From NCBI GenBank assembly GCA_977017575.1, contig CDRNVI010000233.1, positions 1 through 35,638 on the forward strand: a stretch of 35,638 nucleotides of DNA. Reading direction: 5' to 3'. Positions 1,851 to 33,772 of the stretch are shown in pieces; within the stretch, counting starts at the first letter, position 1; each line of letters starts with the position of its first letter. A program made the position numbers and the translations under genes. The notes beneath the pieces were generated by a model. It was not told where the DNA came from, did not search any database, and was given only the letters and a program-made list of their open reading frames with translations. The DNA comes from Paramoeba atlantica. Lineage: Eukaryota; Protista; Discosea.

Positions 1851-2854
1851 ATAAAATTTTAATAACATTAATATATACTTTTAAATAACTTCTATAATTA
1901 ATTCAAAAGAGAATTTATAATTAAGAACTTATAAAACTATATTTAATGATTTAAAACTTAATAACTTGTTGTAATGTTTTCAATATAATAATATATTTAC
2001 GATATATTATCTTCTTTGTTCCAAAATCAGATGTTGATTATCGTACATTCTTATTACATGAAAACATAACAACATAAAGAATACAATAGGCACTCCTTAC
2101 ATTTAAATGCCCTTAATATAATTTATCGATATATTTAATTACACAAATAATTTAAAATATAATTTATAAAATATTAATAAAGTTCATGTAAAATGTAAGA
2201 AGTTACCCTAGTTTTCCTGGTATTGTGAGTATGTTTTCATGTAATAAACATGTACGATAATCAACATCTGATTTTGACTCAAAGCAGAGTAATCATCGTT
2301 AAATATCGTTACAAAGTTATTACAAATAAAACATAAATCACTAATAACAGGAAAATATTAAATACAAAAATATTTAATAAACTTCGATGCAAAAAAGCAT
2401 CTTGACAATCTCTGTGTTTTTGTTAAAAAAAATAGCGTAAAACTACAAAACCATATATATAAAATGAAAAGTGTATAAAAAAGAAAAGCATACACTTTGA
2501 TACATTCAATCGAAAAATATCTCAATCATGTATCATTAATTTTAGTATATATGGTAGGAGTTTTACCTTTACAGTGCTATTAGTCATGTTTTCATGTAAT
2601 AAGAATGTACGATAATCAACATCTGATTTGCACTCAAAGTAGAGTAATCATCGTTAAATATCAGTACAAAGTCATTACAAGAAAACTAAAGATTAAAGCA
2701 CTGTAAAATTGCACTAAGATTTCCTTCAGAAATTCAAGTGCAAATATCCGCCCAACTTATAAAATATAAGTGGCGTCTATATATATTTTTTTATCGAAAA
2801 AAACGATAAATAAATAAAGATCATGATAAGATTTCTACGAAATTCAATCATGAA
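1851..2854. other. Hypervariable hairpin cassette, type A (1 L-module, 2 R-modules, 2 AAGATTT hairpins)
   Basis: The 43-nt motif aaaatcagatgttgattatcgtacattcttattacatgaaaac is at 2023-2065, with inverted copies starting at 2233 and 2588. Each sits in a local hairpin (1967-2074, 2212-2355, 2568-2707). Confidence 0.85.
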
Positions 2855-2993: not shown

Positions 2994-3315
2994 TTTCGTT
3001 AAATTAAGAGAATAATTAAACGAAACTGTTACTCGGCAAAAATAAGGGAATTTTTGAGTAACAGACCGTTCAAATTGAAAACAAAAAAACAATTTGCACG
3101 GCAATTCTTGGGGTTTTTACGCCTCACGGCTTCGTGATTGGACTAAAGAGCAGGAGCGAGAGCAAGAAAGTTTGCAGGGGTAGTTGAGTTAGCTATTCCC
3201 GGTGGAAGCTAACCTCGATTCTTTAGTCTTTAGTTGTGGTAATTTGGGATAGTGAAGTAAAATTTTTAAAGTTCACTATCGACAATTACTATTCTCTTTC
3301 ATCTTTTGGCGTGCA
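2994..3315 (+). ncRNA. Candidate structured ncRNA domain of unknown family (copies at 7533-7854, 12071-12392, 16609-16930, 21264-21585, 25802-26123)
   Basis: Consecutive stems: tttcgtt/aacgaaa, ctgttactc/gagtaacag, tcacg/cgtga, gactaaaga/tctttagtt, gagttagct/agctaacctc, gtaatt/aattac, gatagtgaa/ttcactatc, and long-range tgcacggcaa/ttggcgtgca. Two compensatory double changes occur between array copies. Strand is inferred only from G-U pairs. Confidence 0.5.
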
Positions 3316-3977: not shown

Positions 3978-4347
3978 ATGTTTTTAGCGTTTAAGATCTG
4001 GAGACCATTTTCAAAATAGAAAATGTCAATCGCTTTTTTCTTACGCAAGTACGTCAAAAAAATCGTTTTTCTCCATGAGCTAAAACGAGTTAGTTCGATC
4101 GGGCTTTTTTTGATGCTTTTTTTGGATCGCAGCTTCAACAAAAAAAAATTTCTGCTGCTGTTTTCCAACAAAGAAAATTATAAAAAAATAATTTTGTTGT
4201 TGTCAAATACGATCTTTTAAAATATAAAATTTTTTTTATCGTTATAAATTTTATTCCAACATAAATTTGTTGGAAAAGTAACAGTAAAAAGTTGTTAATG
4301 AAAAAAAATAAATTCATTAACAACAACGTTGATGAAAAATATCAATC

Positions 4348-4812
4348 AACGCTGTTAAATTTCCAACAAAATAATGTCAGAAAAAAATTTCTGCCGAAAT
4401 AATTTAGCTGATTAAATTTTTATCACGACAAAAATATTTTTTTGTGGATCAATTAAATCGTTATTAACAAAAAAGTTATAACGCTGTTAATTTTCCAACC
4501 TAAAAATTTTTTATCTCTCAAAAAATATTTTTTGATGTTCAAAGTTATCGTTTGATAACAAAAAAGTTATAACGCTGTAACTTTTCCAACAAAAAAAATT
4601 TTTTTTCGTGTTAAAAATTATTTTTGATCAATAAAAATTATTTTCGATGTTCAAATTCATCGTTTGATAACAAAAAAGTTATAACGCTGTTAATTTTCCA
4701 TCAAAAATTATTTTTTTTTGCTTCAAAAATTTTTTTTAACATAAAAATTTATAATGATGATTACAAAATAAGTGTTGCAACTCAAAAAAGTTGTTTAACA
4801 CTGTTAATTTTC
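4348..4812 (+). repeat. Five iteron/enhancer-like direct subrepeats AAC(G/A)CTGT..(A/C)TTTTCCA, spaced 91-132 bp, in each unit
   Basis: Motif starts at 4348, 4480, 4571, 4683 and 4797. Three copies are preceded by aacaaaaaagttat. Confidence 0.75.
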
Positions 4813-7800
4813 CATCAACATCATAATTTTTATTTAAAAATTTTAATCAAGATCAATTTTATAAACATTTTTTGTAAAAAAATTAAAATTTTTACTGGAA
4901 AATTACGGTGAGATGCATAAAAATTAGATTTAAACATAAATTTATGCAAACTACCGTTTAATTTCCAACAAAATTTAAATTTTTTTCATTCAAAAATAGA
5001 TTTTTTTAATTTTTCGCCGACAAAATTGAAAAAAAATTGAATTTTCATTCAAAAAGTTGTAAAATTGAGTCTCAGGATGAAAAAGTGGAAAAAGACCACA
5101 TTTTATCAATTCGACGCTAAATTAGCAAAAAATTTCAATTTCTACACCTAAATGACTGTAGAAATTGGTGTTTTCCTACAATTTTGTGGAAATCCCTGAC
5201 AAACACTGCTAAATTTCCAACAAAAAGTCAATTTGCAGGTGCTGCCCGTGGATTTTCCAACAAAATACTAGCAAAACTACTCAAAATGCTATTTTTCCGG
5301 CAGAAAACCGTCAAAATCTGCTTTTTCTGGGCAGGAATGACAAAAACGGCCCAAAAAAGGCCCTGTCATTTTGCCCAAAAACGCAGTATTTTTTCCTGTT
5401 CTGGCCTGCAAATTAGCGGATGTCCAAAGCCCCCAAAAAAAGTGACTTGGACTCCGAGCCGACTCGAAAAGTCGTATTTTCCGGCAGAAACGAAAAAATA
5501 TGCCACATTTTGTCCGACGATTATTTACAACTTTTTCTCGCATCCCATCATGGCGATTTTGCGGATCTGCAGGTTGGGAGGGAGCCAACTGCATTTTTTG
5601 GCCGTTTTGAACCCGTTTTGTAAAAAATCGCATATATAAACTCCATAATTTCCCCTCAGAAATCTGCCACTTTTGGAGGCCAAAAAGTGTTTTGCAGAAT
5701 CTCGAGGGCAAAATAGGAGTTTTTTGACCCGATTTTGTGAACAAAACTGGCATCAAAAACTATTCCAAATGCTCCAATCCGAATTTCAGCTATTGAACAC
5801 TAAAAATGCTGAAAATCGCTATTTCGCACTGGAATTCCGCCAAAACTCCTTTTCAATGCGTATTTTGGGCGAGAAAACCGTCGATTTTATAATTTTTAAA
5901 CTTTTTTTTGTATAATTTATCATTTTTAGCGCGGATTTCTATAATTTCTCGCATAATTTATTAGTTTTATAGCGTTGTAGTTAAAATTTTCATAATTTTA
6001 TCATCAAAGTCATCATTTTTCTATAATTTCAAACAAAATTATTAAAAAAAATGTTGTCTCAGACGAAAAAATTGCATGAAAGTTGTTAAACAACACTAAA
6101 ACTAAAAAAATATCCCGCAGAAATTAAAAAACCGTGATAAAAATTTATAAATTCAAAAGAAAAATTTAAAAATCTTAAAAATTTATGATGAAATCATCTT
6201 CTTTGTACCAAAATCAGATGTAAACATCAAAAAATTTTTTTAAAATCACTAGCTGAAACCATCGTCTATGGTTTCTTTTGTTAATGATCAATGTTTTCAT
6301 TTCATTCATAACATTTTCACGTTAACTTCGTTCAACTAACTTGAATTTTATTAAAATTATGATTCATAAAATAATTTTTTCATTGCTAAAAATAGAATCG
6401 CAATGGAAATTATTATGAAACAAGTTTTAATAATTCAAACTTAAGTTTGAACTCGAGTTATAAAATTTTAATAACATTAATATATACTTTTAAATAACTT
6501 CTATAATTAATTCAAAAGAGAATTTATAATTATGAACTTATAAAACTATATTTAATGATTTAAAAATTTAATAACTTGTTCTAATGTTTTCAATGTAATA
6601 CGATATTTACGATATATGATCTTCTTTGTTCCAAAATCAGATGTTGATTATCGTACATTCTTATTACATGAAAACAAAGAACAGCTACGGATAAGAACTG
6701 AAATGCCTTCCATATACCGAGATACTTTAAATTGATTATAGATAAATTTTCTAAAATATTTAATTACAAAAATAATTTAAAATATTATTTACAAAACTTA
6801 TAAATATAATCAATAAAAGTATACGTTATAAAGGAGCGCATAGTTCCTATCACTTTTAAATACGCTATTTTCCTTGATAAAAAAAATCACTGGAAAATTA
6901 GCAGTCTTTAAAGAACTTCGATACAAAAAAGTATCTTGACAATCTCTGTTGTTTTTGTTACAAAAAAATAGTAAATAACTTCAAACATATATACAAAATT
7001 AAACGTGTATAAAAAAAGAAAAACATACACTTTGATACATTCAATCAAAAAAGATCTCAATCATGTATCATTAACTTTAGCATATATGTAAGAAGTTCCT
7101 TGGTGATTAATTCTTTTACGGTTTTCATGTAATAAACATGTACGATAATCAACATCTGATTTTAACTCAAAGCAGAGTAATCATCGTTAAATATCGTACA
7201 AAAGTTATTACAAAGAAAACTGCTAAGAATTATCATCAGGAAATTGCACTAAGATTTCCTTCAGAAATTCAAGTACAAATATCCGCTTAACTTATAAAAA
7301 GATATAAGTAGCTTCTATATATATTTTTTTATCGAAAAAACGATAAATAAATAAAGATCATGATAAGATTTCTACGAAATTCAATCATGAAGCATACACT
7401 ATAGTGTATGCAAATTATTACAAAAATAATAATTTTAAAATTTTTTTCTTCGTAATTCAAAGAAGAATTTACTTGAAAAAAAATATAAATTTTAATGTTT
7501 TCGTGTTTAACTACAACTTAAATTTATATATATTTCGTTAAATTAAGAGAATAATTAAACGAAACTGTTACTCGGCAAAAATAAGGGAATTTTTGAGTAA
7601 CAGACCGTTCAAATTGAAAACAAAAAAACAATTTGCACGGCAATTCTTGGGGTTTTTACGCCTCACGGCTTCGTGATCGGACTAAAGAGCAGTAGCGAGA
7701 GCAAGAAAGTTTGCAGGGGTAGTTGAGTTAGCTATTCCCGGTGGTAGCTAACCTCGATTCCTTAGTCTTTAGTTGTGGTAATTTGGGATAGCGAAGTAAA

Positions 7801-9146
7801 ATTTTTAAAGTTCGCTATCGACAATTACTATTCTCTTTCATCTTTTGGCGTGCATTGCTAATTGATCCCAATAGACAATCACATTCAGAAACGATCGTAG
7901 CTTTACCTATATGTATGTAAAATATCATACATAAGAATCAATAAGATCTGTTTCGTCTCCTCTTTTTTCTTTTAAAATAGCAGGACTAATCTATATTATA
8001 TAATTATTATTCAACTTTTTTAATTATATTTTATCTGCTTGAACACCATAGTTCGATAAAAAATAAATAAAAAGATGAATAAATAACTAAAAAATAAAGA
8101 TAGACAAGAACAAGAATAGTTTAGTTTAATTCCGTGTTAAATCCTCAATCCTTAAGTCGGATTTGTCACTCCATATACGATCAAACTTTATTTACTTAAA
8201 TTTTTACAAAGATAGTAAAATTAAAAGTATAAAGATGATCTAGCTCACCAGTTTTATTTAAATTAAAATCTTACACAATGATTTTATATTTATAAACTAC
8301 TCGCTTCCATCGACCCTCGACTTTGTTGAAGTTTAAGTTTTTGAGTTTACGATATTAAAGAGAAAAAAAATATTATTGCGCTCTATTGGTGGGGCTTTCG
8401 TTAGATTATTAAAAGCTCAACGTCATTGTTCGCGTTTTACGTTACACTCCACAAGCTAAACAAGTGCGTTCTGCCTTAATAATCATTACCCCTCACCAAA
8501 AGGTCGCAATAATATATGTTTTTAGCGTTTAAGATCTGGAGACCATTTTCAAAATAGAAAATGTCAATCGCTTTTTTCTTACGCAAGTACGTCAAAAAAA
8601 TCGTTTTTCTCCATGAGCTAAAACGAGTTAGTTCGATCGGGCTTTTTTTGATGCTTTTTTTGGATCGCAGCTTCAACAAAAAAAAATTTCTGCTGCTGTT
8701 TTCCAACAAAGAAAATTATAAAAAAATAATTTTGTTGTTGTCAAATACGATCTTTTAAAATATAAAATTTTTTTTATCGTTATAAATTTTATTCCAACAT
8801 AAATTTGTTGGAAAAGTAACAGTAAAAAGTTGTTAATGAAAAAAAATAAATTCATTAACAACAACGTTGATGAAAAATATCAATCAACGCTGTTAAATTT
8901 CCAACAAAATAATGTCAGAAAAAAATTTCTGCCGAAATAATTTAGCTGATTAAATTTTTATCACGACAAAAATATTTTTTTGTGGATCAATTAAATCGTT
9001 ATTAACAAAAAAGTTATAACGCTGTTAATTTTCCAACCTAAAAATTTTTTATCTCTCAAAAAATATTTTTTGATGTTCAAAGTTATCGTTTGATAACAAA
9101 AAAGTTATAACGCTGTAACTTTTCCAACAAAAAAAATTTTTTTTCG
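4609..9146. repeat. Array unit 2 (cassette type B, 4538 bp)
   Basis: Appears identical to unit 3 in every segment compared; ORF-track translations are identical. Confidence 0.95.
6460..7391. other. Hypervariable hairpin cassette, type B (1 L-module, 1 R-module, 2 AAGATTT hairpins); also at 10998-11929, 15536-16467, 24729-25660
   Basis: 43-nt motif at 6633-6675 with an inverted copy at 7121-7163; local hairpins at 6576-6684 and 7096-7242. Confidence 0.85.
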
Positions 9147-12100
9147 TGTTAAAAATTATTTTTGATCAATAAAAATTATTTTCGATGTTCAAATTCATCG
9201 TTTGATAACAAAAAAGTTATAACGCTGTTAATTTTCCATCAAAAATTATTTTTTTTTGCTTCAAAAATTTTTTTTAACATAAAAATTTATAATGATGATT
9301 ACAAAATAAGTGTTGCAACTCAAAAAAGTTGTTTAACACTGTTAATTTTCCATCAACATCATAATTTTTATTTAAAAATTTTAATCAAGATCAATTTTAT
9401 AAACATTTTTTGTAAAAAAATTAAAATTTTTACTGGAAAATTACGGTGAGATGCATAAAAATTAGATTTAAACATAAATTTATGCAAACTACCGTTTAAT
9501 TTCCAACAAAATTTAAATTTTTTTCATTCAAAAATAGATTTTTTTAATTTTTCGCCGACAAAATTGAAAAAAAATTGAATTTTCATTCAAAAAGTTGTAA
9601 AATTGAGTCTCAGGATGAAAAAGTGGAAAAAGACCACATTTTATCAATTCGACGCTAAATTAGCAAAAAATTTCAATTTCTACACCTAAATGACTGTAGA
9701 AATTGGTGTTTTCCTACAATTTTGTGGAAATCCCTGACAAACACTGCTAAATTTCCAACAAAAAGTCAATTTGCAGGTGCTGCCCGTGGATTTTCCAACA
9801 AAATACTAGCAAAACTACTCAAAATGCTATTTTTCCGGCAGAAAACCGTCAAAATCTGCTTTTTCTGGGCAGGAATGACAAAAACGGCCCAAAAAAGGCC
9901 CTGTCATTTTGCCCAAAAACGCAGTATTTTTTCCTGTTCTGGCCTGCAAATTAGCGGATGTCCAAAGCCCCCAAAAAAAGTGACTTGGACTCCGAGCCGA
10001 CTCGAAAAGTCGTATTTTCCGGCAGAAACGAAAAAATATGCCACATTTTGTCCGACGATTATTTACAACTTTTTCTCGCATCCCATCATGGCGATTTTGC
10101 GGATCTGCAGGTTGGGAGGGAGCCAACTGCATTTTTTGGCCGTTTTGAACCCGTTTTGTAAAAAATCGCATATATAAACTCCATAATTTCCCCTCAGAAA
10201 TCTGCCACTTTTGGAGGCCAAAAAGTGTTTTGCAGAATCTCGAGGGCAAAATAGGAGTTTTTTGACCCGATTTTGTGAACAAAACTGGCATCAAAAACTA
10301 TTCCAAATGCTCCAATCCGAATTTCAGCTATTGAACACTAAAAATGCTGAAAATCGCTATTTCGCACTGGAATTCCGCCAAAACTCCTTTTCAATGCGTA
10401 TTTTGGGCGAGAAAACCGTCGATTTTATAATTTTTAAACTTTTTTTTGTATAATTTATCATTTTTAGCGCGGATTTCTATAATTTCTCGCATAATTTATT
10501 AGTTTTATAGCGTTGTAGTTAAAATTTTCATAATTTTATCATCAAAGTCATCATTTTTCTATAATTTCAAACAAAATTATTAAAAAAAATGTTGTCTCAG
10601 ACGAAAAAATTGCATGAAAGTTGTTAAACAACACTAAAACTAAAAAAATATCCCGCAGAAATTAAAAAACCGTGATAAAAATTTATAAATTCAAAAGAAA
10701 AATTTAAAAATCTTAAAAATTTATGATGAAATCATCTTCTTTGTACCAAAATCAGATGTAAACATCAAAAAATTTTTTTAAAATCACTAGCTGAAACCAT
10801 CGTCTATGGTTTCTTTTGTTAATGATCAATGTTTTCATTTCATTCATAACATTTTCACGTTAACTTCGTTCAACTAACTTGAATTTTATTAAAATTATGA
10901 TTCATAAAATAATTTTTTCATTGCTAAAAATAGAATCGCAATGGAAATTATTATGAAACAAGTTTTAATAATTCAAACTTAAGTTTGAACTCGAGTTATA
11001 AAATTTTAATAACATTAATATATACTTTTAAATAACTTCTATAATTAATTCAAAAGAGAATTTATAATTATGAACTTATAAAACTATATTTAATGATTTA
11101 AAAATTTAATAACTTGTTCTAATGTTTTCAATGTAATACGATATTTACGATATATGATCTTCTTTGTTCCAAAATCAGATGTTGATTATCGTACATTCTT
11201 ATTACATGAAAACAAAGAACAGCTACGGATAAGAACTGAAATGCCTTCCATATACCGAGATACTTTAAATTGATTATAGATAAATTTTCTAAAATATTTA
11301 ATTACAAAAATAATTTAAAATATTATTTACAAAACTTATAAATATAATCAATAAAAGTATACGTTATAAAGGAGCGCATAGTTCCTATCACTTTTAAATA
11401 CGCTATTTTCCTTGATAAAAAAAATCACTGGAAAATTAGCAGTCTTTAAAGAACTTCGATACAAAAAAGTATCTTGACAATCTCTGTTGTTTTTGTTACA
11501 AAAAAATAGTAAATAACTTCAAACATATATACAAAATTAAACGTGTATAAAAAAAGAAAAACATACACTTTGATACATTCAATCAAAAAAGATCTCAATC
11601 ATGTATCATTAACTTTAGCATATATGTAAGAAGTTCCTTGGTGATTAATTCTTTTACGGTTTTCATGTAATAAACATGTACGATAATCAACATCTGATTT
11701 TAACTCAAAGCAGAGTAATCATCGTTAAATATCGTACAAAAGTTATTACAAAGAAAACTGCTAAGAATTATCATCAGGAAATTGCACTAAGATTTCCTTC
11801 AGAAATTCAAGTACAAATATCCGCTTAACTTATAAAAAGATATAAGTAGCTTCTATATATATTTTTTTATCGAAAAAACGATAAATAAATAAAGATCATG
11901 ATAAGATTTCTACGAAATTCAATCATGAAGCATACACTATAGTGTATGCAAATTATTACAAAAATAATAATTTTAAAATTTTTTTCTTCGTAATTCAAAG
12001 AAGAATTTACTTGAAAAAAAATATAAATTTTAATGTTTTCGTGTTTAACTACAACTTAAATTTATATATATTTCGTTAAATTAAGAGAATAATTAAACGA

Positions 12101-13684: not shown

Positions 13685-16600
13685 TGTTAAAAATTATTTT
13701 TGATCAATAAAAATTATTTTCGATGTTCAAATTCATCGTTTGATAACAAAAAAGTTATAACGCTGTTAATTTTCCATCAAAAATTATTTTTTTTTGCTTC
13801 AAAAATTTTTTTTAACATAAAAATTTATAATGATGATTACAAAATAAGTGTTGCAACTCAAAAAAGTTGTTTAACACTGTTAATTTTCCATCAACATCAT
13901 AATTTTTATTTAAAAATTTTAATCAAGATCAATTTTATAAACATTTTTTGTAAAAAAATTAAAATTTTTACTGGAAAATTACGGTGAGATGCATAAAAAT
14001 TAGATTTAAACATAAATTTATGCAAACTACCGTTTAATTTCCAACAAAATTTAAATTTTTTTCATTCAAAAATAGATTTTTTTAATTTTTCGCCGACAAA
14101 ATTGAAAAAAAATTGAATTTTCATTCAAAAAGTTGTAAAATTGAGTCTCAGGATGAAAAAGTGGAAAAAGACCACATTTTATCAATTCGACGCTAAATTA
14201 GCAAAAAATTTCAATTTCTACACCTAAATGACTGTAGAAATTGGTGTTTTCCTACAATTTTGTGGAAATCCCTGACAAACACTGCTAAATTTCCAACAAA
14301 AAGTCAATTTGCAGGTGCTGCCCGTGGATTTTCCAACAAAATACTAGCAAAACTACTCAAAATGCTATTTTTCCGGCAGAAAACCGTCAAAATCTGCTTT
14401 TTCTGGGCAGGAATGACAAAAACGGCCCAAAAAAGGCCCTGTCATTTTGCCCAAAAACGCAGTATTTTTTCCTGTTCTGGCCTGCAAATTAGCGGATGTC
14501 CAAAGCCCCCAAAAAAAGTGACTTGGACTCCGAGCCGACTCGAAAAGTCGTATTTTCCGGCAGAAACGAAAAAATATGCCACATTTTGTCCGACGATTAT
14601 TTACAACTTTTTCTCGCATCCCATCATGGCGATTTTGCGGATCTGCAGGTTGGGAGGGAGCCAACTGCATTTTTTGGCCGTTTTGAACCCGTTTTGTAAA
14701 AAATCGCATATATAAACTCCATAATTTCCCCTCAGAAATCTGCCACTTTTGGAGGCCAAAAAGTGTTTTGCAGAATCTCGAGGGCAAAATAGGAGTTTTT
14801 TGACCCGATTTTGTGAACAAAACTGGCATCAAAAACTATTCCAAATGCTCCAATCCGAATTTCAGCTATTGAACACTAAAAATGCTGAAAATCGCTATTT
14901 CGCACTGGAATTCCGCCAAAACTCCTTTTCAATGCGTATTTTGGGCGAGAAAACCGTCGATTTTATAATTTTTAAACTTTTTTTTGTATAATTTATCATT
15001 TTTAGCGCGGATTTCTATAATTTCTCGCATAATTTATTAGTTTTATAGCGTTGTAGTTAAAATTTTCATAATTTTATCATCAAAGTCATCATTTTTCTAT
15101 AATTTCAAACAAAATTATTAAAAAAAATGTTGTCTCAGACGAAAAAATTGCATGAAAGTTGTTAAACAACACTAAAACTAAAAAAATATCCCGCAGAAAT
15201 TAAAAAACCGTGATAAAAATTTATAAATTCAAAAGAAAAATTTAAAAATCTTAAAAATTTATGATGAAATCATCTTCTTTGTACCAAAATCAGATGTAAA
15301 CATCAAAAAATTTTTTTAAAATCACTAGCTGAAACCATCGTCTATGGTTTCTTTTGTTAATGATCAATGTTTTCATTTCATTCATAACATTTTCACGTTA
15401 ACTTCGTTCAACTAACTTGAATTTTATTAAAATTATGATTCATAAAATAATTTTTTCATTGCTAAAAATAGAATCGCAATGGAAATTATTATGAAACAAG
15501 TTTTAATAATTCAAACTTAAGTTTGAACTCGAGTTATAAAATTTTAATAACATTAATATATACTTTTAAATAACTTCTATAATTAATTCAAAAGAGAATT
15601 TATAATTATGAACTTATAAAACTATATTTAATGATTTAAAAATTTAATAACTTGTTCTAATGTTTTCAATGTAATACGATATTTACGATATATGATCTTC
15701 TTTGTTCCAAAATCAGATGTTGATTATCGTACATTCTTATTACATGAAAACAAAGAACAGCTACGGATAAGAACTGAAATGCCTTCCATATACCGAGATA
15801 CTTTAAATTGATTATAGATAAATTTTCTAAAATATTTAATTACAAAAATAATTTAAAATATTATTTACAAAACTTATAAATATAATCAATAAAAGTATAC
15901 GTTATAAAGGAGCGCATAGTTCCTATCACTTTTAAATACGCTATTTTCCTTGATAAAAAAAATCACTGGAAAATTAGCAGTCTTTAAAGAACTTCGATAC
16001 AAAAAAGTATCTTGACAATCTCTGTTGTTTTTGTTACAAAAAAATAGTAAATAACTTCAAACATATATACAAAATTAAACGTGTATAAAAAAAGAAAAAC
16101 ATACACTTTGATACATTCAATCAAAAAAGATCTCAATCATGTATCATTAACTTTAGCATATATGTAAGAAGTTCCTTGGTGATTAATTCTTTTACGGTTT
16201 TCATGTAATAAACATGTACGATAATCAACATCTGATTTTAACTCAAAGCAGAGTAATCATCGTTAAATATCGTACAAAAGTTATTACAAAGAAAACTGCT
16301 AAGAATTATCATCAGGAAATTGCACTAAGATTTCCTTCAGAAATTCAAGTACAAATATCCGCTTAACTTATAAAAAGATATAAGTAGCTTCTATATATAT
16401 TTTTTTATCGAAAAAACGATAAATAAATAAAGATCATGATAAGATTTCTACGAAATTCAATCATGAAGCATACACTATAGTGTATGCAAATTATTACAAA
16501 AATAATAATTTTAAAATTTTTTTCTTCGTAATTCAAAGAAGAATTTACTTGAAAAAAAATATAAATTTTAATGTTTTCGTGTTTAACTACAACTTAAATT

Positions 16601-18221: not shown

Positions 18222-21200
18222 TGTTAAAAATTATTTTTGATCAATAAAAATTATTTTCGATGTTCAAATTCATCGTTTGATAACAAAAAAGTTATAACGC
18301 TGTTAATTTTCCATCAAAAATTATTTTTTTTGCTTCAAAAATTTTTTTTAACATAAAAATTTATGATGATGATTACAAAACCAGTGTTGCAACTCAAAAA
18401 AGTTGTTTAACACTGTGAATTTTCCATCAACATCATAATTTTTATTTAAAAATTTTAATCAAAATCAATTTTATAAACATTTTTTGTAAAAAAATTAAAA
18501 TTTTTACTGGAAAATTACGGTGAGATGCATAAAAATTAGATTTAAACATAAATTTATGCAAACTACCGTTTAATTTCCAACAAAATTTAAATTTTTTTCA
18601 TTCAAAAATAGATTTTTTTAATTTTTCGCTGACAAAATTGAAAAAAAATTGAATTTTCATTCAAAAAGTTGTAAAATTGAGTCTCAGGATGAAAAAGTGG
18701 AAAAAGACCACATTTTATCAATTCGACGCTAAATTAGCAAAAAATTTCAATTTCTACACCTAAATGACTGTAGAAATTGGTGTTTTCCTACAATTTTGTG
18801 GAAATCCCTGACAAACACTGCTAAATTTCCAACAAAAAGTCAATTTGCAGGTGCTGCCCGTGGATTTTCCAACAAAATACTAGCAAAACTACTCAAAATG
18901 CTATTTTTCCGGCAGAAAACCGTCAAAATCTGCTTTTTCTGGGCAGGAATGACAAAAACGGCCCAAAAAAGGCCCTGTCATTTTGCCCAAAAACGCAGTA
19001 TTTTTTCCTGTTCTGGCCTGCAAATTAGCGGATGTCCAAGTGCCCCAAAAAAAGTGACTTGCACTCCGAGCCGACTCGAAAAGTCGTATTTTCCGGCAGA
19101 AACGAAAAAATATGCCACATTTTGTCCGACGATTATTTACAACTTTTTCTCGCATCCCATCATAGCGATTTTGCGGATCTGCAGGTTGGGAGGGAGCCAA
19201 CTGCATTTTTTGGCCGTTTTGAACCCGTTTTGTAAAAAATCGCATATATAAACTCCTTAATTTCCCCTCAGAAATCTGCCACTTTTGGAGACCAAAAAGT
19301 GTTTTGCAGAATCTAAAGTGGAAAATAGGAGTTTTTTGACCCGATTTTGTGAACAAAACTGGCATCAAAAACTATTCCAAATGCTCCAATCCGAATTTCA
19401 GCTATTGAACACTAAAAATGCTGAAAATCGCTATTTCGCACTGGAATTCCGCCAAAACTCCTTTTCAATGCGTATTTTGGGCGAGAAAACCGTCGATTTT
19501 ATAATTTTTAAACTTTTTTTTGTATAATTTATCATTTTTAGCGCGGATTTCTATAATTTCTCGCATAATTTATTAGTTTTATAGCGTTGTAGTTAAAATT
19601 TTCATAATTTTATCATCAAAGTCATCATTTTTCTATAATTTCAAACAAAATTATTAAAAAAAATGTTGTCTCAGACGAAAAAATTGCATGAAAGTTGTTA
19701 AACAACACTAAAACTAAAAAAATATCCCGCAGAAATTAAAAAACCGTGATAAAAATTTATAAATTCAAAAGAAAAATTTAAAAATCTTAAAAATTTATGA
19801 TGAAATCATCTTCTTTGTACCAAAATCAGATGTAAACATCAAAAAATTTTTTTAAAATCACTAGTTGAAACCATCGTCTATGGTTTCTTTTGTTAATGAT
19901 CAATGTTTTCATTTCATTCATAACATTTTCACGTTAACTTCGTTCAACTAACTTGAATTTTATTAAAATTATGATTCATAAAATAATTTTTTCATTGCTA
20001 AAAATAGAATCGCAATGGAAATTATTATGAAACAAGTTTTAATAATTCAAACTTAAGTTTGAACTCGAGTTATAAAATTTTATAAATTTAAATTATAATT
20101 TCAATCATTTCTATAATTAATTCAATAGAGAATTTATAATTATGAAACTATGAAACTATATTTAATGATTTAAAATTTAATAATCCCTGTATGTGTTCTT
20201 TATGTTTTCAATGTCTGATGATATGTTCGATATATCATCTTCTTTGTACCAAAATCAGATGTTGATTATCGTACATTCTTATTACATGAAAACAAAAAAG
20301 AACATACAACAGGGAAATACTAAGATACTTTAATAACTATTATGTATATAAATTGATCGAATATATAATTACAAAAATAATTTAAAATATTCAATAATAT
20401 TAAATATATATAGTTATTAAAGTGATCTTGTATCCTAGTTCATGTCGATTCTTTTAGGTTTTCATGTAATAAGAATGTACGATAATCAACATCTGATTTT
20501 GACTCAAAGTAGAGTAATCATCGTTAAATATCAGTACAAAACTTATTACAAAGAAAACAACTAATAAAGCATCGACATGAAATTCTGCTAAGATTTCTAC
20601 GAAATTCAAGCAGAAAATTACACTAAGATTTCCTATAGAAATTCAAGTGTAAACAAACATTAGTATTGCAAAAACAATCTATGTTTGTATTAAAAAAAAC
20701 ACATCTAGAACAATATAATATAAATCAATAAAAATATTTAATTACAAAAATAATATAAAATATAATTTATAAATTTATTATTAAAATGATCTAGATGAAC
20801 ATATTCCTGGGTATTCTAATGTGGTTTTCATGTAATAAACATGTACGATAATCAACATCTGATTTTGACTCAAAGTAGAGTAATCATCGTTAAATATCGT
20901 ATAAAGTTTATTAATAATAAAACCACAAAGGAATCCAAGGAATAATTATGCTAAGATTTATACTAAATTCAAGCATAAGATTGCACTAAGATTTCCTTCA
21001 GAAATTCAAGTGCAAATATCCGCTCAACTTATAAAATATAAGTGGCGTCTATATATTTAATCATTACAAAAATAATGAATTAAATAGATCATGATAAGAT
21101 TTTTTACAAAAATTCAATCATGAAGCATACACTATAGTGTATGCAAATTATTACAAAAATAATAATTTTAAAATTTTTTCTTCGAAATTCAAAGAAGAAT

Positions 21201-22877
21201 TTATTCGAAAAAAATATAAATTTTAATGTTTACGTGTTTAACTACAACTTAAATTTATATATATTTCGTTAAATTAAGAGAATAATTAAACGAAACTGTT
21301 ACTCGGCAAAAATAAGGGAATTTTTGAGTAACAGACCGTTCAAATTGAAAACAAAAAAACAATTTGCACGGCAATTCTTGGGGTTTTTACGCCTCACGGC
21401 TTCGTGATTGGACTAAAGAGCAGGAGCGAGAGCAAGAAAGTTTGCAGGGGTAGTTGAGTTAGCTATTCCCGGTGGTAGCTAACCTCGATTCCTTAGTCTT
21501 TAGTTGTGATAATTTGGGATAGCGAAGTAAAATTTTTAAAGTTCGCTATCGACAATTATTGTTCTCTTTCATCTTTTGGCGTGCATTGCTAATTGATCCC
21601 AATAGACAATCACATTCAGAAACGATCGTAGCTTTACCTATATGTATGTAAAATATCATACATAAGAATCAATAAGATCTGTTTCGTCTCCTCTTTTTTC
21701 TTTTAAAATAGCAGGACTAATCTATATTATATAATTATTATTCAACTTTTTTAATTATATTTTATCTGCTTGAACACCATAGTTCGATAAAAAATAAATA
21801 AAAAGATGAATAAATAACTAAAAAATAAAGATAGACAAGAACAAGAATAGTTTAGTTTAATTCCGTGTTAAATCCTCAATCCTTAAGTCGGATTTGTCAC
21901 TCCATATACGATCAAACTTTATTTACTTAAATTTTTACAAAGATAGTAAAATTAAAAGTATAAAGATGATCTAGCTCACCAGTTTTATTTAAATTAAAAT
22001 CTTACACAATGATTTTATATTTATAAACTACTCGCTTCCATCGACCCTCGACTTTGTTGAAGTTTAAGTTTTTGAGTTTACGATATTAAAGAGAAAAAAA
22101 ATATTATTGCGCTCTATTGGTGGGGCTTTCGTTAGATTATTAAAAGCTCAACGTCATTGTTCGCGTTTTACGTTACACTCCACAAGCTAAACAAGTGCGT
22201 TCTGCCTTAATAATCACTACCCCTCACCAAAAGGTCGCAATAATATATGTTTTTAGCGTTTAAGATCTGGAGACCATTTTCAAAATAGAAAATGTCAATC
22301 GCTTTTTTCTTACGCAAGTACGTCAAAAAAATCGTTTTTCTCCATGAGCTAAAACGAGTTAGTTCGATCGGGCTTTTTTTGATGCTTTTTTTGGATCGCA
22401 GCTTCAACAAAAAAAAATTTCTGCTGCTGTTTTCCAACAAAGAAAATTATAAAAAAATAATTTTGTTGTTGTCAAATACGATCTTTTAAAATATAAAATT
22501 TTTTTTATCGTTATAAATTTTATTCCAACATAAATTTGTTGGAAAAGTAACAGTAAAAAGTTGTTAATGAAAAAAAATAAATTCATTAACAACAACGTTG
22601 ATGAAAAATATCAATCAACGCTGTTAAATTTCCAACAAAATAATGTCAGAAAAAAATTTCTGCCGAAATAATTTAGCTGATTAAATTTTTATCACGACAA
22701 AAATATTTTTTTGTGGATCAATTAAATCGTTATTAACAAAAAAGTTATAACGCTGTTAATTTTCCAACCTAAAAATTTTTTATCTCTCAAAAAATATTTT
22801 TTGATGTTCAAAGTTATCGTTTGATAACAAAAAAGTTATAACGCTGTAACTTTTCCAACAAAAAAAATTTTTTTTCG
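18222..22877. repeat. Array unit 5 (cassette type C, 4656 bp)
   Basis: Backbone homologous with scattered SNPs. The cassette is ~120 bp longer than type B and strongly diverged. Confidence 0.95.
20072..21124. other. Hypervariable hairpin cassette, type C (1 L-module, 2 R-modules, 5 AAGATTT hairpins)
   Basis: 43-nt motif at 20251-20293, a perfect inverted copy at 20458-20500 and a second inverted copy at 20824-20866; local hairpins at 20184-20315, 20439-20581 and 20802-20944. Confidence 0.85.
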
Positions 22878-25800
22878 TGTTAAAAATTATTTTTGATCAA
22901 TAAAAATTATTTTCGATGTTCAAATTCATCGTTTGATAACAAAAAAGTTATAACGCTGTTAATTTTCCATCAAAAATTATTTTTTTTTGCTTCAAAAATT
23001 TTTTTTAACATAAAAATTTATAATGATGATTACAAAATAAGTGTTGCAACTCAAAAAAGTTGTTTAACACTGTTAATTTTCCATCAACATCATAATTTTT
23101 ATTTAAAAATTTTAATCAAGCTCAATTTTATAAACATTTTTTGTAAAAAAATTAAAATTTTTACTGGAAAATTACGGTGAGATGCATAAAAATTAGATTT
23201 AAACATAAATTTATGCAAACTACCGTTTAATTTCCAACAAAATTTAAATTTTTTTCATTCAAAAATAGATTTTTTTAATTTTTCGCCGACAAAATTGAAA
23301 AAAAATTGAATTTTCATTCAAAAAGTTGTAAAATTGAGTCTCAGGATGAAAAAGTGGAAAAAGACCACATTTTATCAATTCGACGCTAAATTAGCAAAAA
23401 ATTTCAATTTCTACACCTAAATGACTGTAGAAATTGGTGTTTTCCTACAATTTTGTGGAAATCCCTGACAAACACTGCTAAATTTCCAACAAAAAGTCAA
23501 TTTGCAGGTGCTGCCCGTGGATTTTCCAACAAAATACTAGCAAAACTACTCAAAATGCTATTTTTCCGGCAGAAAACCGTCAAAATCTGCTTTTTCTGGG
23601 CAGGAATGACAAAAACGGCCCAAAAAAGGCCCTGTCATTTTGCCCAAAAACGCAGTATTTTTTCCTGTTCTGGCCTGCAAATTAGCGGATGTCCAAAGCC
23701 CCCAAAAAAAGTGACTTGGACTCCGAGCCGACTCGAAAAGTCGTATTTTCCGGCAGAAACGAAAAAATATGCCACATTTTGTCCGACGATTATTTACAAC
23801 TTTTTCTCGCATCCCATCATGGCGATTTTGCGGATCTGCAGGTTGGGAGGGAGCCAACTGCATTTTTTGGCCGTTTTGAACCCGTTTTGTAAAAAATCGC
23901 ATATATAAACTCCATAATTTCCCCTCAGAAATCTGCCACTTTTGGAGGCCAAAAAGTGTTTTGCAGAATCTCGAGGGCAAAATAGGAGTTTTTTGACCCG
24001 ATTTTGTGAACAAAACTGGCATCAAAAACTATTCCAAATGCTCCAATCCGAATTTCAGCTATTGAACACTAAAAATGCTGAAAATCGCTATTTCGCACTG
24101 GAATTCCGCCAAAACTCCTTTTCAATGCGTATTTTGGGCGAGAAAACCGTCGATTTTATAATTTTTAAACTTTTTTTTGTATAATTTATCATTTTTAGCG
24201 CGGATTTCTATAATTTCTCGCATAATTTATTAGTTTTATAGCGTTGTAGTTAAAATTTTCATAATTTTATCATCAAAGTCATCATTTTTCTATAATTTCA
24301 AACAAAATTATTAAAAAAAATGTTGTCTCAGACGAAAAAATTGCATGAAAGTTGTTAAACAACACTAAAACTAAAAAAATATCCCGCAGAAATTAAAAAA
24401 CCGTGATAAAAATTTATAAATTCAAAAGAAAAATTTAAAAATCTTAAAAATTTATGATGAAATCATCTTCTTTGTACCAAAATCAGATGTAAACATCAAA
24501 AAATTTTTTTAAAATCACTAGCTGAAACCATCGTCTATGGTTTCTTTTGTTAATGATCAATGTTTTCATTTCATTCATAACATTTTCACGTTAACTTCGT
24601 TCAACTAACTTGAATTTTATTAAAATTATGATTCATAAAATAATTTTTTCATTGCTAAAAATAGAATCGCAATGGAAATTATTATGAAACAAGTTTTAAT
24701 AATTCAAACTTAAGTTTGAACTCGAGTTATAAAATTTTAATAACATTAATATATACTTTTAAATAACTTCTATAATTAATTCAAAAGAGAATTTATAATT
24801 ATGAACTTATAAAACTATATTTAATGATTTAAAAATTTAATAACTTGTTCTAATGTTTTCAATGTAATACGATATTTACGATATATGATCTTCTTTGTTC
24901 CAAAATCAGATGTTGATTATCGTACATTCTTATTACATGAAAACAAAGAACAGCTACGGATAAGAACTGAAATGCCTTCCATATACCGAGATACTTTAAA
25001 TTGATTATAGATAAATTTTCTAAAATATTTAATTACAAAAATAATTTAAAATATTATTTACAAAACTTATAAATATAATCAATAAAAGTATACGTTATAA
25101 AGGAGCGCATAGTTCCTATCACTTTTAAATACGCTATTTTCCTTGATAAAAAAAATCACTGGAAAATTAGCAGTCTTTAAAGAACTTCGATACAAAAAAG
25201 TATCTTGACAATCTCTGTTGTTTTTGTTACAAAAAAATAGTAAATAACTTCAAACATATATACAAAATTAAACGTGTATAAAAAAAGAAAAACATACACT
25301 TTGATACATTCAATCAAAAAAGATCTCAATCATGTATCATTAACTTTAGCATATATGTAAGAAGTTCCTTGGTGATTAATTCTTTTACGGTTTTCATGTA
25401 ATAAACATGTACGATAATCAACATCTGATTTTAACTCAAAGCAGAGTAATCATCGTTAAATATCGTACAAAAGTTATTACAAAGAAAACTGCTAAGAATT
25501 ATCATCAGGAAATTGCACTAAGATTTCCTTCAGAAATTCAAGTACAAATATCCGCTTAACTTATAAAAAGATATAAGTAGCTTCTATATATATTTTTTTA
25601 TCGAAAAAACGATAAATAAATAAAGATCATGATAAGATTTCTACGAAATTCAATCATGAAGCATACACTATAGTGTATGCAAATTATTACAAAAATAATA
25701 ATTTTAAAATTTTTTTCTTCGTAATTCAAAGAAGAATTTACTTGAAAAAAAATATAAATTTTAATGTTTTCGTGTTTAACTACAACTTAAATTTATATAT

Positions 25801-26158: not shown

Positions 26159-26165
26159 GCGTGTT

Positions 26166-26450
26166 GGCTGGCCTATATGTATGTAAAGGATCATCCTGGG
26201 TGCTGCCTTTTTGTTAAAGGCGGCTGCGGGGATCGGTCTTACCGCCGATTTCGGGGCGCGTCATCTGGCAGCACATGCAGATGGCCGAGGGCGTCATTGG
26301 CGTGAATTTGTCGATCAGGTCAATAGCTTGGCACTTGTAAAGAATGAAGATGAGATGGTTCGCGACGGTGCCTGTGCGGCCTTTGAATTTTTCCGTAATC
26401 TGCTGATGGTAGAGGCCGCGCGCACGGCTGACACGCAATCCCACGGTTGA
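26166..26450 (+). CDS. hemO: Heme oxygenase (biliverdin-producing, HemO/PigA family), 3' part only, cut by the junction
   Basis: ORF 26211-26450 contains FGARHLA...GR...W..FV...GA..AF..F..LL, as in the Pseudomonas PigA C-terminus. Upstream bases read G-W-(+1 nt)-L-Y-V-C-K-G-S-S-(-1 nt)-L-G-A-A-F-L-L-K, matching the family motif GWLxVxEGSxLGAAFL. Confidence 0.85.
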
Positions 26451-26476
26451 AAGGCTCTCGCAGTGGGTATCCCGAC

Positions 26477-26505
26477 TTGATTTCTGCGCAAACCGGCTGT
26501 ATAAA
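26477..26505 (+). promoter_or_regulatory. Putative sigma70 promoter of the rimP-nusA-infB operon
   Basis: TTGATT (26477-82), 17-nt spacer, TATAAA (26500-05), upstream of rimP. Confidence 0.55.
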
Positions 26506-26532
26506 GCCGCCAAGCTTTTTGTAAAACCGGAC

Positions 26533-26560
26533 AAAGAGTGGGCCTTGCGCCCGCTCTTTT
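26533..26560 (+). promoter_or_regulatory. rimP leader hairpin (attenuator/terminator-like)
   Basis: aaagagtgggc-cttgc-gcccgctcttt(t): 11-bp stem ending in a U-run, between the promoter and the rimP start. Similar leader hairpins are known upstream of rimP in other bacteria. Confidence 0.55.
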
Positions 26561-26587
26561 GTGCATTTTGGGGTATGGCATCGCTAT

Positions 26588-27127
26588 ATGGCCGAACTGA
26601 TTGGACAGCAGTTAAAAGACCCGTTGATGGCGAAGGTCACGGAAATTATTGAACCGTCGATCAACGCGCTGGGTTTTGAACTTGTCCGCGTCTCCATGAC
26701 CGGACAGGACCACAATATCCTGCAGATCATGGCAGATCGTGCGGACGCCAAAGGCAGCATCAATGTTACTGAATGCGCCGAAATCAGCCGTACTGTTTCT
26801 GCCCTTATGGATGTCGAGGATCCGATTTCAGGTGCGTATCACCTTGAAGTCAGTTCCCCGGGGATCGACCGTCCTTTAACCCGTGCACCGCATTTTGAAG
26901 TGTGGAAGGGGTTTGAGGCAAAGGTCGAACTGACGATGGCCCAGAATGGTCGTCGTCGCTTCAGCGGTTTGCTGGATGGGATTGAAGATAATGCGGTCGC
27001 CCTGATTGTTGATGGCGAACGTGTCTTGTTACCGCTGGCCGATATCGCAAAGTCGAAATTGGTGTTGACGGATGAATTGATCGCGCATGTCACCGGCCAA
27101 CGCCGGACTGACGACACCGCAGAATAG
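26588..27127 (+). CDS. rimP: Ribosome maturation factor RimP
   Basis: Motifs GFELVRV, LQIMADR, CAEISR.VSALMDVEDPI.GAYHLEVSSPGIDRPL; first gene of the nusA operon. Start is uncertain (ATG 26588 or 26627). Confidence 0.96.
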   Translation: MAELIGQQLKDPLMAKVTEIIEPSINALGFELVRVSMTGQDHNILQIMADRADAKGSINVTECAEISRTVSALMDVEDPISGAYHLEVSSPGIDRPLTRAPHFEVWKGFEAKVELTMAQNGRRRFSGLLDGIEDNAVALIVDGERVLLPLADIAKSKLVLTDELIAHVTGQRRTDDTAE

Positions 27128-27136
27128 AGGTTGGAT

Positions 27137-28705
27137 ATGGAAGCCACTTCGGGAATGCCACGGCCGGAACTTTTGCAAGTTGCTGATGCCGTTGCCCGTG
27201 AAAAGGGTATTGATCGTGATGAGGTTCTTGGCGCAATGGAGCAGGCCATTCAGAAGGCTGGCCGCTCCAGATATGGCCATGAACATGACATCCGTGCCCA
27301 TATCGACCGTAAAACCGGCGAGATCAAACTCGCGCGTTTCGTTGAAGTCACCGATGACATCGAAAACGATTTTACGCAGATGTCGCTCGAACAGGCGCGT
27401 ATCCGTGATGAAAACATCAATCTGGGTGAGTTCCTGATTGATCCGTTGCCGCCGATTGATTTTGGTCGTATCGCTGCACAGACCGCCAAGCAGGTTATCG
27501 TTCAGAAAGTGCGCGACGCAGAGCGTGAACGTCAGTTCGAAGAATACAAAGACCGTGCCGACGAAGTCATCAATGGCTTGGTCAAGCGTGTTGAATTTGG
27601 CAACGTTCTGGTTGATATCGGCCGTGCCGAGGCCATCCTGCGCCGCGAAGAGCTGATCCCGCGTGAAACAGTACGTCAGGGTGATCGCGTTCGTGCGGTG
27701 ATCCTGGATGTGCGCCGCGAACAGCGCGGCCCGCAAATCTTCCTGTCGCGGACCCATCCTGCTTTCATGGCCAAACTTTTTGCCCAGGAAGTACCGGAAA
27801 TCTACGACGGTATTATCGAAATCAAATCGGTGGCCCGTGATCCGGGTTCGCGCGCTAAAATCTCGGTTCAGTCGTCAGACACCTCGATCGATCCGGTCGG
27901 TGCCTGTGTCGGTATGCGCGGTTCGCGTGTGCAGGCGGTTGTTGCCGAATTGCAGGGCGAAAAAATCGATATCATTCAGTGGTCGGAAGATCCGGCAACC
28001 TTTGTTGTGAACGCATTGGCACCTGCCGAGGTCACCAAGGTTGTTCTGGATGAAGAAACCAATCGTATCGAAGTCGTCGTGCCGGATGATCAACTGAGCC
28101 TGGCCATTGGTCGTCGCGGTCAGAACGTGCGTCTGGCGTCTCAGCTTACCGGTTGGGATATCGATATTCTGACCGAGGAAGACGAAAGCGAACGTCGTCA
28201 GGAAGAAGCGCGCAAGCGTGCGGAAATGTTCATCAAGGCACTTGATGTTGATGAAGTTATCGCCCATCTCCTGGTCGCCGAAGGCTTTACCTCGATCGAG
28301 GAAGTTGGCTATGTGCCGTTGGCCGAGCTGGCAGAAATCGAAGGTTTCGAAGAAGAAATCGCCGAGGAACTGCGTACCCGTGCGCGGACCTTCCTGTCGG
28401 ACGAAGCTGAACGTCTTCAGAAACGCCGCGAAGAACTTAAGGTTGCTGACGATCTGGTCGAATTTAACGGCCTGTCGCTGGCAGTTGTTGTGCGTCTTGG
28501 CGAGAACGAGGTTAAAAACCTTGAAGATTTCGCCGATTTGGCAAGTGACGAGCTGATCGAATTTGCCGGCGATGCCGACAATATCACCATGGATCAGGCG
28601 AACGACATGATCATGGAAGCCCGTCGCAAGCTTGGCTGGTTCGAAGGTCTTGAAGAAGAGACCGTTGAGACTGCTGACGAAGCAGTTGAAAGCGAACAGG
28701 CCTAA
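27137..28705 (+). CDS. nusA: Transcription termination/antitermination factor NusA
   Basis: FGRIAAQTAKQVI, S1 domain, ARDPGSRAKI, DPVGACVGMRGSRVQ, SLAIGRRGQNVRLAS (KH domains) and acidic C-terminal repeats. GAGG RBS lies 6 nt before ATG 27137. Confidence 0.99.
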   Translation: MEATSGMPRPELLQVADAVAREKGIDRDEVLGAMEQAIQKAGRSRYGHEHDIRAHIDRKTGEIKLARFVEVTDDIENDFTQMSLEQARIRDENINLGEFLIDPLPPIDFGRIAAQTAKQVIVQKVRDAERERQFEEYKDRADEVINGLVKRVEFGNVLVDIGRAEAILRREELIPRETVRQGDRVRAVILDVRREQRGPQIFLSRTHPAFMAKLFAQEVPEIYDGIIEIKSVARDPGSRAKISVQSSDTSIDPVGACVGMRGSRVQAVVAELQGEKIDIIQWSEDPATFVVNALAPAEVTKVVLDEETNRIEVVVPDDQLSLAIGRRGQNVRLASQLTGWDIDILTEEDESERRQEEARKRAEMFIKALDVDEVIAHLLVAEGFTSIEEVGYVPLAELAEIEGFEEEIAEELRTRARTFLSDEAERLQKRREELKVADDLVEFNGLSLAVVVRLGENEVKNLEDFADLASDELIEFAGDADNITMDQANDMIMEARRKLGWFEGLEEETVETADEAVESEQA

Positions 28706-28723
28706 GGCCGATCGGAGGACACC

Positions 28724-29314
28724 ATGTCGCATCGCAAAGGCGGCAAGGTAGCCGAGGTTCCGGAACGCCGGTGCATTGTCACCGGCGAGGTCCGGGCCAA
28801 GGAAGATCTTCTCAGGGTTGTGATCGGACCAGATGGTTCGGTTGTTCCCGATCTTGAGGAACGGTTGCCGGGACGGGGATTATGGTTGTGCCCGTCGCGG
28901 GATGTGATAAATACCGCCTGTGCAAAGAATGCCTTTGCCCGGGCAGCGCGGCAAAAAGTCGTGATCGACCCCGAGCTTGCTGACCGGATCGAGCAGCTGC
29001 TAACGCAGAAATGTCTTGATCTGTTGTCGCTTGCACGACGTGCCGGTCAAGCCGTTGCCGGGTTTGAAAAAGCACGTGCCCAAATTGCTGAGGGTGCGGC
29101 TCTGATATTGGCAGCACGCGATGGTGCTGCAGACGGAAAATCCAAGATCGAGGCCAAGGCCCGGGATCTGCCGATTTATTCCGTTCTGAACGCTGCTGAA
29201 ATCGGCGCGGCTTTTGGTCGTGAAAAAGCAGTACATGTGGCCGTTGCGCCAGGAGGTCTGGCCAAACGGCTGGGTCGCTCCTTGAAGCGGCTTGAAGGAT
29301 TTCGCGCAGTCTGA
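28724..29314 (+). CDS. ylxR: YlxR/DUF448 RNA-binding protein fused to an L7Ae-like domain
   Basis: N-terminal PERRCIVT...LLRVV...VVPD...LPGRGLW (DUF448). C-terminal [16 protein letters not shown]...A.DGA.DG..K...AEIGAAFGR...HVAV (L7Ae/YlxQ-like). GGAGG RBS and position between nusA and infB fit. Confidence 0.9.
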
Positions 29315-29394
29315 CAACAGGCGTGCGCCGGACGGACAGGACAGGGTCGACATGTGAAGTCGATCCCGCAGGAAATGAGGAAGTTGGACGGATT

Positions 29395-32076: not shown

Positions 32077-32093
32077 GGCGGTGAGGATCTGAA

Positions 32094-33439: not shown

Positions 33440-33456
33440 AGGCGAAAGGATGCCTG

Positions 33457-33726: not shown

Positions 33727-33735
33727 TTTCGAACT

Positions 33736-33767
33736 ACGGCGGAGGGTGACCTCCGCCGTCGTTTTTT
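33736..33767 (+). terminator. Rho-independent terminator after rpsO
   Basis: acggcggagg-gtga-cctccgccgt (10-bp GC-rich stem) followed by cgtttttt. Confidence 0.85.
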
Positions 33768-33772
33768 ATTGT

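Follow-up and report, generated by a model that had tools for sequence, protein, structure and literature searches.

The window analysed in the current work is a stretch of 35,638 nucleotides (contig CDRNVI010000233.1 of the Paramoeba atlantica assembly GCA_977017575.1, forward strand), the AT-rich part of which contains eight sequence variants of a long hairpin module, all located in a hypervariable island of approximately 1 kb within a 4.54-kb tandemly repeated unit. In these modules one arm is constrained in sequence, the stem that closes the hairpin stays complementary, and the part in between decays. The modules are interpreted here as foldback cassettes that occupy the variable island of a probable kinetoplast-type repeat, in which the constrained arm would act in cis and the closing stem would be renewed by hairpin-templated copying, a reading to which we assign a probability of about 0.4; nothing shows that the modules make microRNA-like or guide RNAs.

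Eight hairpin modules with one constrained arm

The modules are defined by a core of 42 nt with two variable positions, GTTTTCATGTAATAA[GA/AC]ATGTACGATAATCAACATCTGATTT, for which 14 exact matches, distributed over both strands, were retrieved versus 0 expected by chance. Since the window represents a tandem repeat of 4.54 kb, these 14 copies correspond to 8 distinct modules (M1 to M8). Five of them, of 140-147 nt, carry the core on the plus strand (type I), and three, of 108-132 nt, carry it on the minus strand (type II). The canonical unit contains one type II and one type I module, and units 1 and 5 contain one type II and two type I modules.

Unit 1 harbours M1 (1967-2074, minus strand, type II), the basal stem of which comprises 6 bp only (-5.7 kcal/mol), M2 (2212-2355, plus strand, type I), being an extra middle module with the stem ttttcctg.tatt.gtga / tcac.aata.caggaaaa, and M3 (2568-2707, plus strand, type I), which is closed by a perfect outer stem of 11 bp (tttacagtgct/agcactgtaaa) and represents the positional orthologue of M5 and M8. 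M4 (6576-6684, minus strand, type II; basal stem of 7 bp, -9.8 kcal/mol) recurs in identical form at 11114-11222, 15652-15760 and 24845-24953, and M5 (7096-7242, plus strand, type I) has identical copies at 11634-11780, 16172-16318 and 25365-25511. The remaining modules are M6 (20184-20315, minus strand, type II), with the long basal stem tccctg..tgttcttt / aaagaaca..caggga, M7 (20439-20581, plus strand, type I), with a perfect 11-bp outer stem (ttcatgtcgat/atcgacatgaa), and M8 (20802-20944, plus strand, type I).

Each module folds as a single long imperfect hairpin with conserved internal loops, the minimum free energy of which ranges from -30 to -49 kcal/mol and corresponds to z scores of -5.3 to -10.2 when compared to dinucleotide shuffles. 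The core matches and the folding together confirm the eight hairpins which an earlier reading of the same DNA (hereafter the original prediction) had placed at these positions. The array it described corresponds to three variants of a 4.54-kb unit that is repeated six times. The arm common to all hairpins had been described as near-invariant and 43 nt in length; its invariance stands, 40 of the 42 core positions being identical across the eight modules, whereas its length is corrected to 42 nt, and in the five plus-strand modules the invariant block reaches ≈78 nt, encompassing the core, the apical loop and the inner 3’ arm.

The basal arms, on the other hand, can hardly be aligned from module to module (42-69% identity), and yet they pair with their own partner: the mean energy of the basal duplex amounts to -15.9 kcal/mol for cognate arms versus -7.0 kcal/mol for non-cognate arms, and the observed value was reached in 0 of 20000 permutations. 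The proposal that these duplexes are specific to each module and nevertheless paired is thereby borne out, with M1 and M4 (6-7 bp) as weak cases. When M3 is compared to M5, its positional orthologue in a unit that differs little elsewhere, identity amounts to 95% in the core, 91% in the apex and 85% in the distal 3’ arm, to 79% and 89% in the two flanks, and to 48% and 56% in the two basal arms. Considering that the latter diverge far beyond the flanks, the basal duplex is a hot spot of concerted change in its two arms, and its sequence turns over faster than that of the surrounding DNA. The variable arms are related to each other, the modules occur in both orientations and their spacing is irregular, in agreement with the earlier view that they are diverging paralogues; a CRISPR-type (clustered regularly interspaced short palindromic repeats) array, defined by direct repeats and unrelated, uniform spacers, is not what is found.

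When all eight modules were aligned by sequence, RNAalifold recovered just 12 invariant pairs, as types I and II have their 3’ arms out of register; the covariation counts given here rest on the five colinear plus-strand modules in a register-true alignment with 42 consensus pairs. In the inner basal helix, 6 of 13 pairs exhibit compensated double changes, whereas none of the 29 pairs of the upper stem does: 21 of these never vary, 1 shows a one-sided change and 7 are broken only, every broken pair being due to a change in the 3’ arm facing the frozen core. The covariation score, which reflects five related sequences only, is 0.117 versus 0.064 in shuffles, and 5 of 500 shuffles reach it. The minus-strand modules behave alike, in that their non-core arm differs among units 1, 2 and 5.

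The concerted change of both arms had been put forward as a signature of selection on secondary structure; the concerted change itself is supported for the basal helix, but covariation as a signature of RNA-structure selection over the whole hairpin is not supported. Since a compensated stem coexists here with a decaying upper stem, the observation that both arms change together is, taken alone, no proof of selection on RNA structure, and the modules offer a clean natural example of this caution. Template switching during replication is known to make or repair stems, and a single such event can introduce several base changes that look compensatory (PMC8794818, PMC5453318).

Proposed readings as small-RNA hairpins or foldback DNA

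The opposite strand of the modules folds equally well or better. Mismatches of the G·U type number 9 on the core strand versus 8 on the other, and mismatches between the two arms are mostly transversions and indels; at 75% A+T the G·U count is weak evidence, and it does not point to a transcribed strand. This bears on one interpretation contained in the original prediction, namely a nuclear cluster of hairpins producing microRNAs (miRNAs), hairpin RNAs (hpRNAs) or small interfering RNAs, with the invariant arm as the product. The modules do share with such clusters the grouping of long imperfect hairpins with conserved internal loops and with one arm more conserved than the other, and the 42 nt of the invariant arm equal 2 x 21. 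A search of Rfam 15, however, returned nothing at gathering score, so that no described precursor family is matched and the earlier statement that no known family is recognised still applies. Under permissive settings the matches were noise (23-26 bits versus thresholds of 100-150), and the best one on a module, to MIR3932 (23.3 bits versus 150, E 0.69), amounts to a weak likeness to miRNA precursor models far below the gathering score. The two core halves had no match in public metagenome contigs, nor did the one half that was compared to viral contigs.

A miRNA duplex would lie in the upper stem, and in its 29 pairs no maintenance by compensatory or G·U changes was seen. There is furthermore no strand asymmetry, and the copy number is extreme in an AT-rich, bent context; Dicer-type pathways are not expected because this context is a hyper-abundant, probably organellar repeat. 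The sole RNA-labelled sequencing run (X23, 17 M letters of contigs, not a small-RNA library) contains no contig on the unit, which is weak evidence as the run is tiny. Taken together, the interpretation as a miRNA or hpRNA cluster is unlikely, and for a nuclear cluster of this kind we see very little chance.

The repeat that carries the modules is exceptionally abundant. In run X1, which represents a multi-enzyme Hi-C library as its internal joints fall at GATC, GANTC and TTAA sites, ≈622,000 of 3.48 million contigs (≈18%) fall on the unit, and the summed word depth is in the millions on the unit and ≈17-100 (about 70) on the adjoining bacterial DNA. In addition, the segment 4300-5110 contains 54 A/T tracts phased at 10.2 bp (phasing power of 20.7 versus a null 99th percentile of 12.4, with 0 of 2000 nulls reaching 20.7), and is an intrinsically bent region like that of minicircles. 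Because the unit is hyper-abundant and carries this phased A-tract segment, we infer a kinetoplast-type origin: there is a somewhat better than even chance that it belongs to inflated kinetoplast-type DNA, of which it would most likely be the bulk, non-maxicircle part (of kinetoplast or mitochondrial DNA). Mitochondria of kinetoplastids and diplonemids can hold half to >90% of cellular DNA, which is AT-rich and mostly non-coding (PMC6334171, PMC4669381). Among the features of minicircle-class molecules, the unit possesses the bent region (phased A-tracts, 4300-5110), high copy number (as judged from the share of X1 contigs) and a conserved backbone with a variable region of 2-3 cassettes; it does not possess conserved sequence block 3 (CSB-3). 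A giant nuclear satellite would be the alternative origin.

In this repeat, the modules would be imperfect DNA palindromes, present as eight sequence variants and in both orientations, and their constrained arm would be a cis-acting recognition sequence, exposed on a hairpin or cruciform that forms either in single-stranded DNA or in a primary transcript. Such an element could be a replication or nicking site, or else a processing signal. The closing stem would be renewed by hairpin-templated copying, either through template switching or through conversion within the palindrome, and selection might additionally favour a stem that stays closed. An interpretation at the DNA level fits the equal folding of both strands, the absence of a G·U bias, the richness of the unit in hairpins, the presence of a second hairpin family and the presence of remnants. 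With regard to hairpin content, the modules stand out in a sliding fold scan at z about -8, and so do several unrelated segments of the unit, with values up to z -11.8 at 22512-22661.

The second hairpin family, centred on AAGATTT(n)AAATTCA with variable 7-bp stems, is found at 2707-2745, 2819-2855, 7242-7280, 20581-20655 and 20944-21125. It is unrelated to the modules, though it shares their design of a conserved centre on variable stems; 7 of its 8 variants are perfectly paired, and the commonest copy (x4) has one uncompensated break. As to remnants, a mini-hairpin at 6866-6900 (plus strand, ttttccttgat..atcactggaaaa), which occurs in unit-2-type copies at the place taken by M2 in unit 1, looks like a centre-deleted module of which an M2-like basal stem alone was kept, and DNA palindromes are expected to lose their centre in this way. 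A fragment of the apex (6196-6221, minus strand; 26 nt comprising the end of the core and the loop, 96% identity) occurs once per unit (also at 1587-1612) and folds as a mini-hairpin of its own.

If the repeat is the bulk of an inflated kinetoplast DNA, the cassettes would be its only sequence-constrained, rapidly diversifying features and would thus stand out as candidate guide-RNA genes or candidate signals for replication or processing, all of which are poorly defined in early-branching and free-living kinetoplastids.

A number of points weigh against the interpretation of the modules as foldback cassettes with a cis element. The function of the constrained arm and the organellar location of the unit are both reached by inference, the invariance of the 42 nt would suit a short RNA product equally well, and template switching alone leaves the excess divergence of the basal arms over the flanks without explanation. 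As for the location, the depth data would look the same for a giant nuclear satellite, no mitochondrial gene was found in the unit, and CSB-3 (the universal minicircle dodecamer, GGGGTTGGTGTA) is absent from the repeat when up to 2 mismatches are allowed, its sole match being in the bacterial part of the window. Finally, the repeat occurs in runs of ≈12 differently labelled organisms, being nearly identical (up to 0.92 of sampled words) in runs X1-X16, and a widespread protist or bleed-through of a hyper-abundant library are both guesses as to the cause.

Alternative readings as guide-RNA cassettes or selfish palindromes

The modules could also be cassettes of the guide RNA (gRNA) type in a non-trypanosomatid kinetoplast DNA, where the hairpin would be a scaffold, promoter or processing element, and where the guide would be either the variable arm of ≈20-25 nt (the other arm being its intramolecular antisense) or the invariant 42 nt itself. 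This reading, which takes up the other option of the original prediction (a constant scaffold with variable guides), is considered unlikely, even though several properties of the unit point in its direction, such as its very high copy number combined with bent DNA, and basal arms that are hypervariable relative to their flanks. With respect to layout, gRNA-bearing kinetoplast DNA includes the two-cassette minicircles of Bodo saltans, the 1.3-2.2-kb circles of Papus ankaliazontas and the ScaI-flanked contigs of Trypanoplasma borreli (PMC7859406, PMC9679448). These bodonid and prokinetoplastid molecules resemble the unit in having a conserved backbone, short variable regions with conserved motifs next to them, 2-3 cassettes that lie on both strands and thus have opposite polarity, and coverage far above nuclear. 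They differ from the unit in carrying a CSB-3-like sequence and variable regions that match edited mRNAs, and they are not described as being embedded in hairpins. The gRNAs of T. borreli are short (median of 28 nt) and adjoin conserved motifs (PMC9679448), which likewise favours this reading.

A comparison to Trypanosoma brucei, the minicircle gRNA cassettes of which consist of 18-bp inverted repeats around ≈142 nt (PMC9202587, PMC6868439), gives a mixed picture. The type I modules (140-147 nt) are of the same overall size as the median cassette of 142 nt bracketed by inverted repeats (PMC9202587), with an inverted repeat of ≈20 bp around ≈100 nt, and both systems have several cassettes per molecule, with both orientations possible, on a high-copy AT-rich carrier with a bent segment. 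Conservation, however, is reversed: the repeats of T. brucei are conserved and the gRNA interior varies, whereas in the modules the bracketing repeats vary (48-70% identity) around a constant interior, so that the modules do not show the T. brucei arrangement of constant 18-bp inverted repeats enclosing a variable gRNA gene. Their interior is, moreover, itself a long imperfect hairpin, CSB-3 is lacking, and the unit is 4.5 kb in length and tandem. A gRNA function is further disfavoured by the presence of 8 variants only, the same ones of which recur in other runs, and by a truly variable stretch of just ≈20 nt. When G·U-tolerant targets of the variable arms were searched within the unit, none was found beyond those of shuffled arms, and six k-mers of the repeat were absent from the supplements of a Perkinsela paper (gRNA candidates and edited transcripts). 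A new kind of gRNA cassette in the inflated kinetoplast DNA of a marine kinetoplastid that has been little studied, composed of an ≈80-nt scaffold and a short guide duplexed with its own antisense, or releasing a 42-nt RNA, appears equally improbable or slightly more so; if true, its layout would be the reverse of that in T. brucei, and a possible clue to ancestral processing of gRNA precursors.

Alternatively, the modules may be selfish, non-functional palindromes that spread and decay in a non-coding repeat, their arm symmetry resulting purely from the mode of copying. The occurrence of 2 or 3 modules per unit in both orientations, the truncated apex copies and centre-deleted remnants, the general richness of the unit in hairpins and the lack of a strand signal would all be in line with this. 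There are precedents in the hairpin elements (RHE) of sponge mitochondrial DNA (PMC2800124) and the organelle palindromes of Volvox carteri (PMC2670323), which, as the modules do in their presumed organellar setting, form hairpin families in bloated AT-rich non-coding DNA, with both orientations, truncated copies and arms staying complementary. These elements are, however, shorter and dispersed in intergenic regions, whereas the modules all lie within a single island of a tandem unit and combine a strictly invariant 42-nt arm with an asymmetrically decaying partner. The invariance of this arm across eight otherwise diverged paralogues, with sharp, shared boundaries, argues for selection at the sequence level, and purely selfish palindromes are considered an unlikely explanation.

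Miniature inverted-repeat transposable elements (MITEs) and Foldback elements have in common with the modules a foldback structure, variation in copy number and arms that are more alike within a copy than between copies. Conserved terminal inverted repeats accompanied by target-site duplications, as expected for such elements, were not encountered: no target-site duplication or other direct repeat was seen flanking the modules when their ends were read from the sequence, the copies are not dispersed, and conservation is lowest at the termini, where transposase-driven MITEs keep their repeats conserved.

The tandem unit and the bacterial segment

The composition of the window changes once, from 22-36% GC over positions 1 to ≈26150 to 51-56% GC from ≈26200 onward. 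The AT-rich part (1-26158) is composed of six head-to-tail units of ≈4538 bp each, which start near 1, 4610, 9148, 13686, 18222 and 22879, units 1 and 5 being longer (4609 bp and 4655 bp, respectively). The backbone is 97-100% identical from unit to unit, except for the one hypervariable stretch of ≈1 kb that contains the hairpins; three variants of the unit are present among the six copies.

The bent segment overlaps with an iterated motif of 47 nt (..AACGCTGTTAAATTTCCAACAAAA..; ..AACGCTGTTAA(A/T)TTTCCA(A/T)CAAAA..), which is located at 4300-5230 and at the equivalent place in each unit, in 5-6 copies per unit that are 91-132 bp apart and each preceded by a small hairpin; this region resembles an array of the iteron, origin or promoter type. 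The most non-random fold of the unit, at 22512-22661 (corresponding to 8780-8930 in unit 2), comprises several short, nested hairpins that surround the first 47-nt motif. Positions 5180-5900, and the equivalent place in each unit, form an island of ≈40% GC with many short GC hairpins and A-runs between them, in which open frames of 151 and 155 aa overlap, one on each strand. Neither open reading frame (ORF) had a match in Pfam, and look-ups of the exact products retrieved no record; the two ORFs are probably spurious and the island non-coding. A further GC-richer, multi-helix segment at 7560-7900 (2994-3315 of unit 1) had no match in Rfam even at permissive thresholds. The peptidyl-transferase motif of the large ribosomal subunit (LSU) is absent from the repeat, and a tRNA search returned none.

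The repeat ends after position 26158 (...cacattcaga), and genomes of the Thalassospira group can be aligned to the window from 26159/26164 onward. A BLAST match of the repeat carries on to 26194, because an identity of 16 nt (cctatatgtatgtaaa) is placed 13 nt to the right of the join. Runs X3 and X4 contain the repeat without the bacterial block, an X3 contig extends beyond 26194 with ordinary repeat continuation, and a bacterial contig of X1 spans 26159-26670 and is then followed by 95 nt unlike the window; the depth of the repeat and that of the bacterial part are approximately four to five orders of magnitude apart. In view of the missing block in X3 and X4, the X3 continuation and the diverging X1 contig, the join 26158|26159, which the reads do not support, most plausibly reflects a mis-join or a chimeric molecule. 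If the repeat reached other runs by bleed-through, the missing bacterial part in those runs says little, but the evidence from the X1 contig and from the difference in depth is unaffected. Horizontal transfer of a bacterial operon into a protist genome was considered and is ruled out by the depth gap, the 95-nt divergence in X1 and the X3 continuation; the coupling of protist repeat DNA to bacterial DNA in this contig is accordingly not to be taken as such a transfer. The presence of one unsupported join could raise the suspicion that the hairpins or the repeat are themselves an assembly artefact and not real in the organism. This is extremely unlikely, as the repeat, including the M3 and M7 variants, was recovered in contigs of several runs (3006 nt in X4 and 1249 nt in X3).

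The bacterial segment (26159-35638, plus strand, 55% GC) contains a rimP-like ORF, nusA, infB, an ORF of the size of rbfA, and truB, in the usual bacterial order. It thus encodes NusA, IF-2 and TruB, and its NusA shares 96% identity with the counterpart in Thalassospira profundimaris, a marine alphaproteobacterium.

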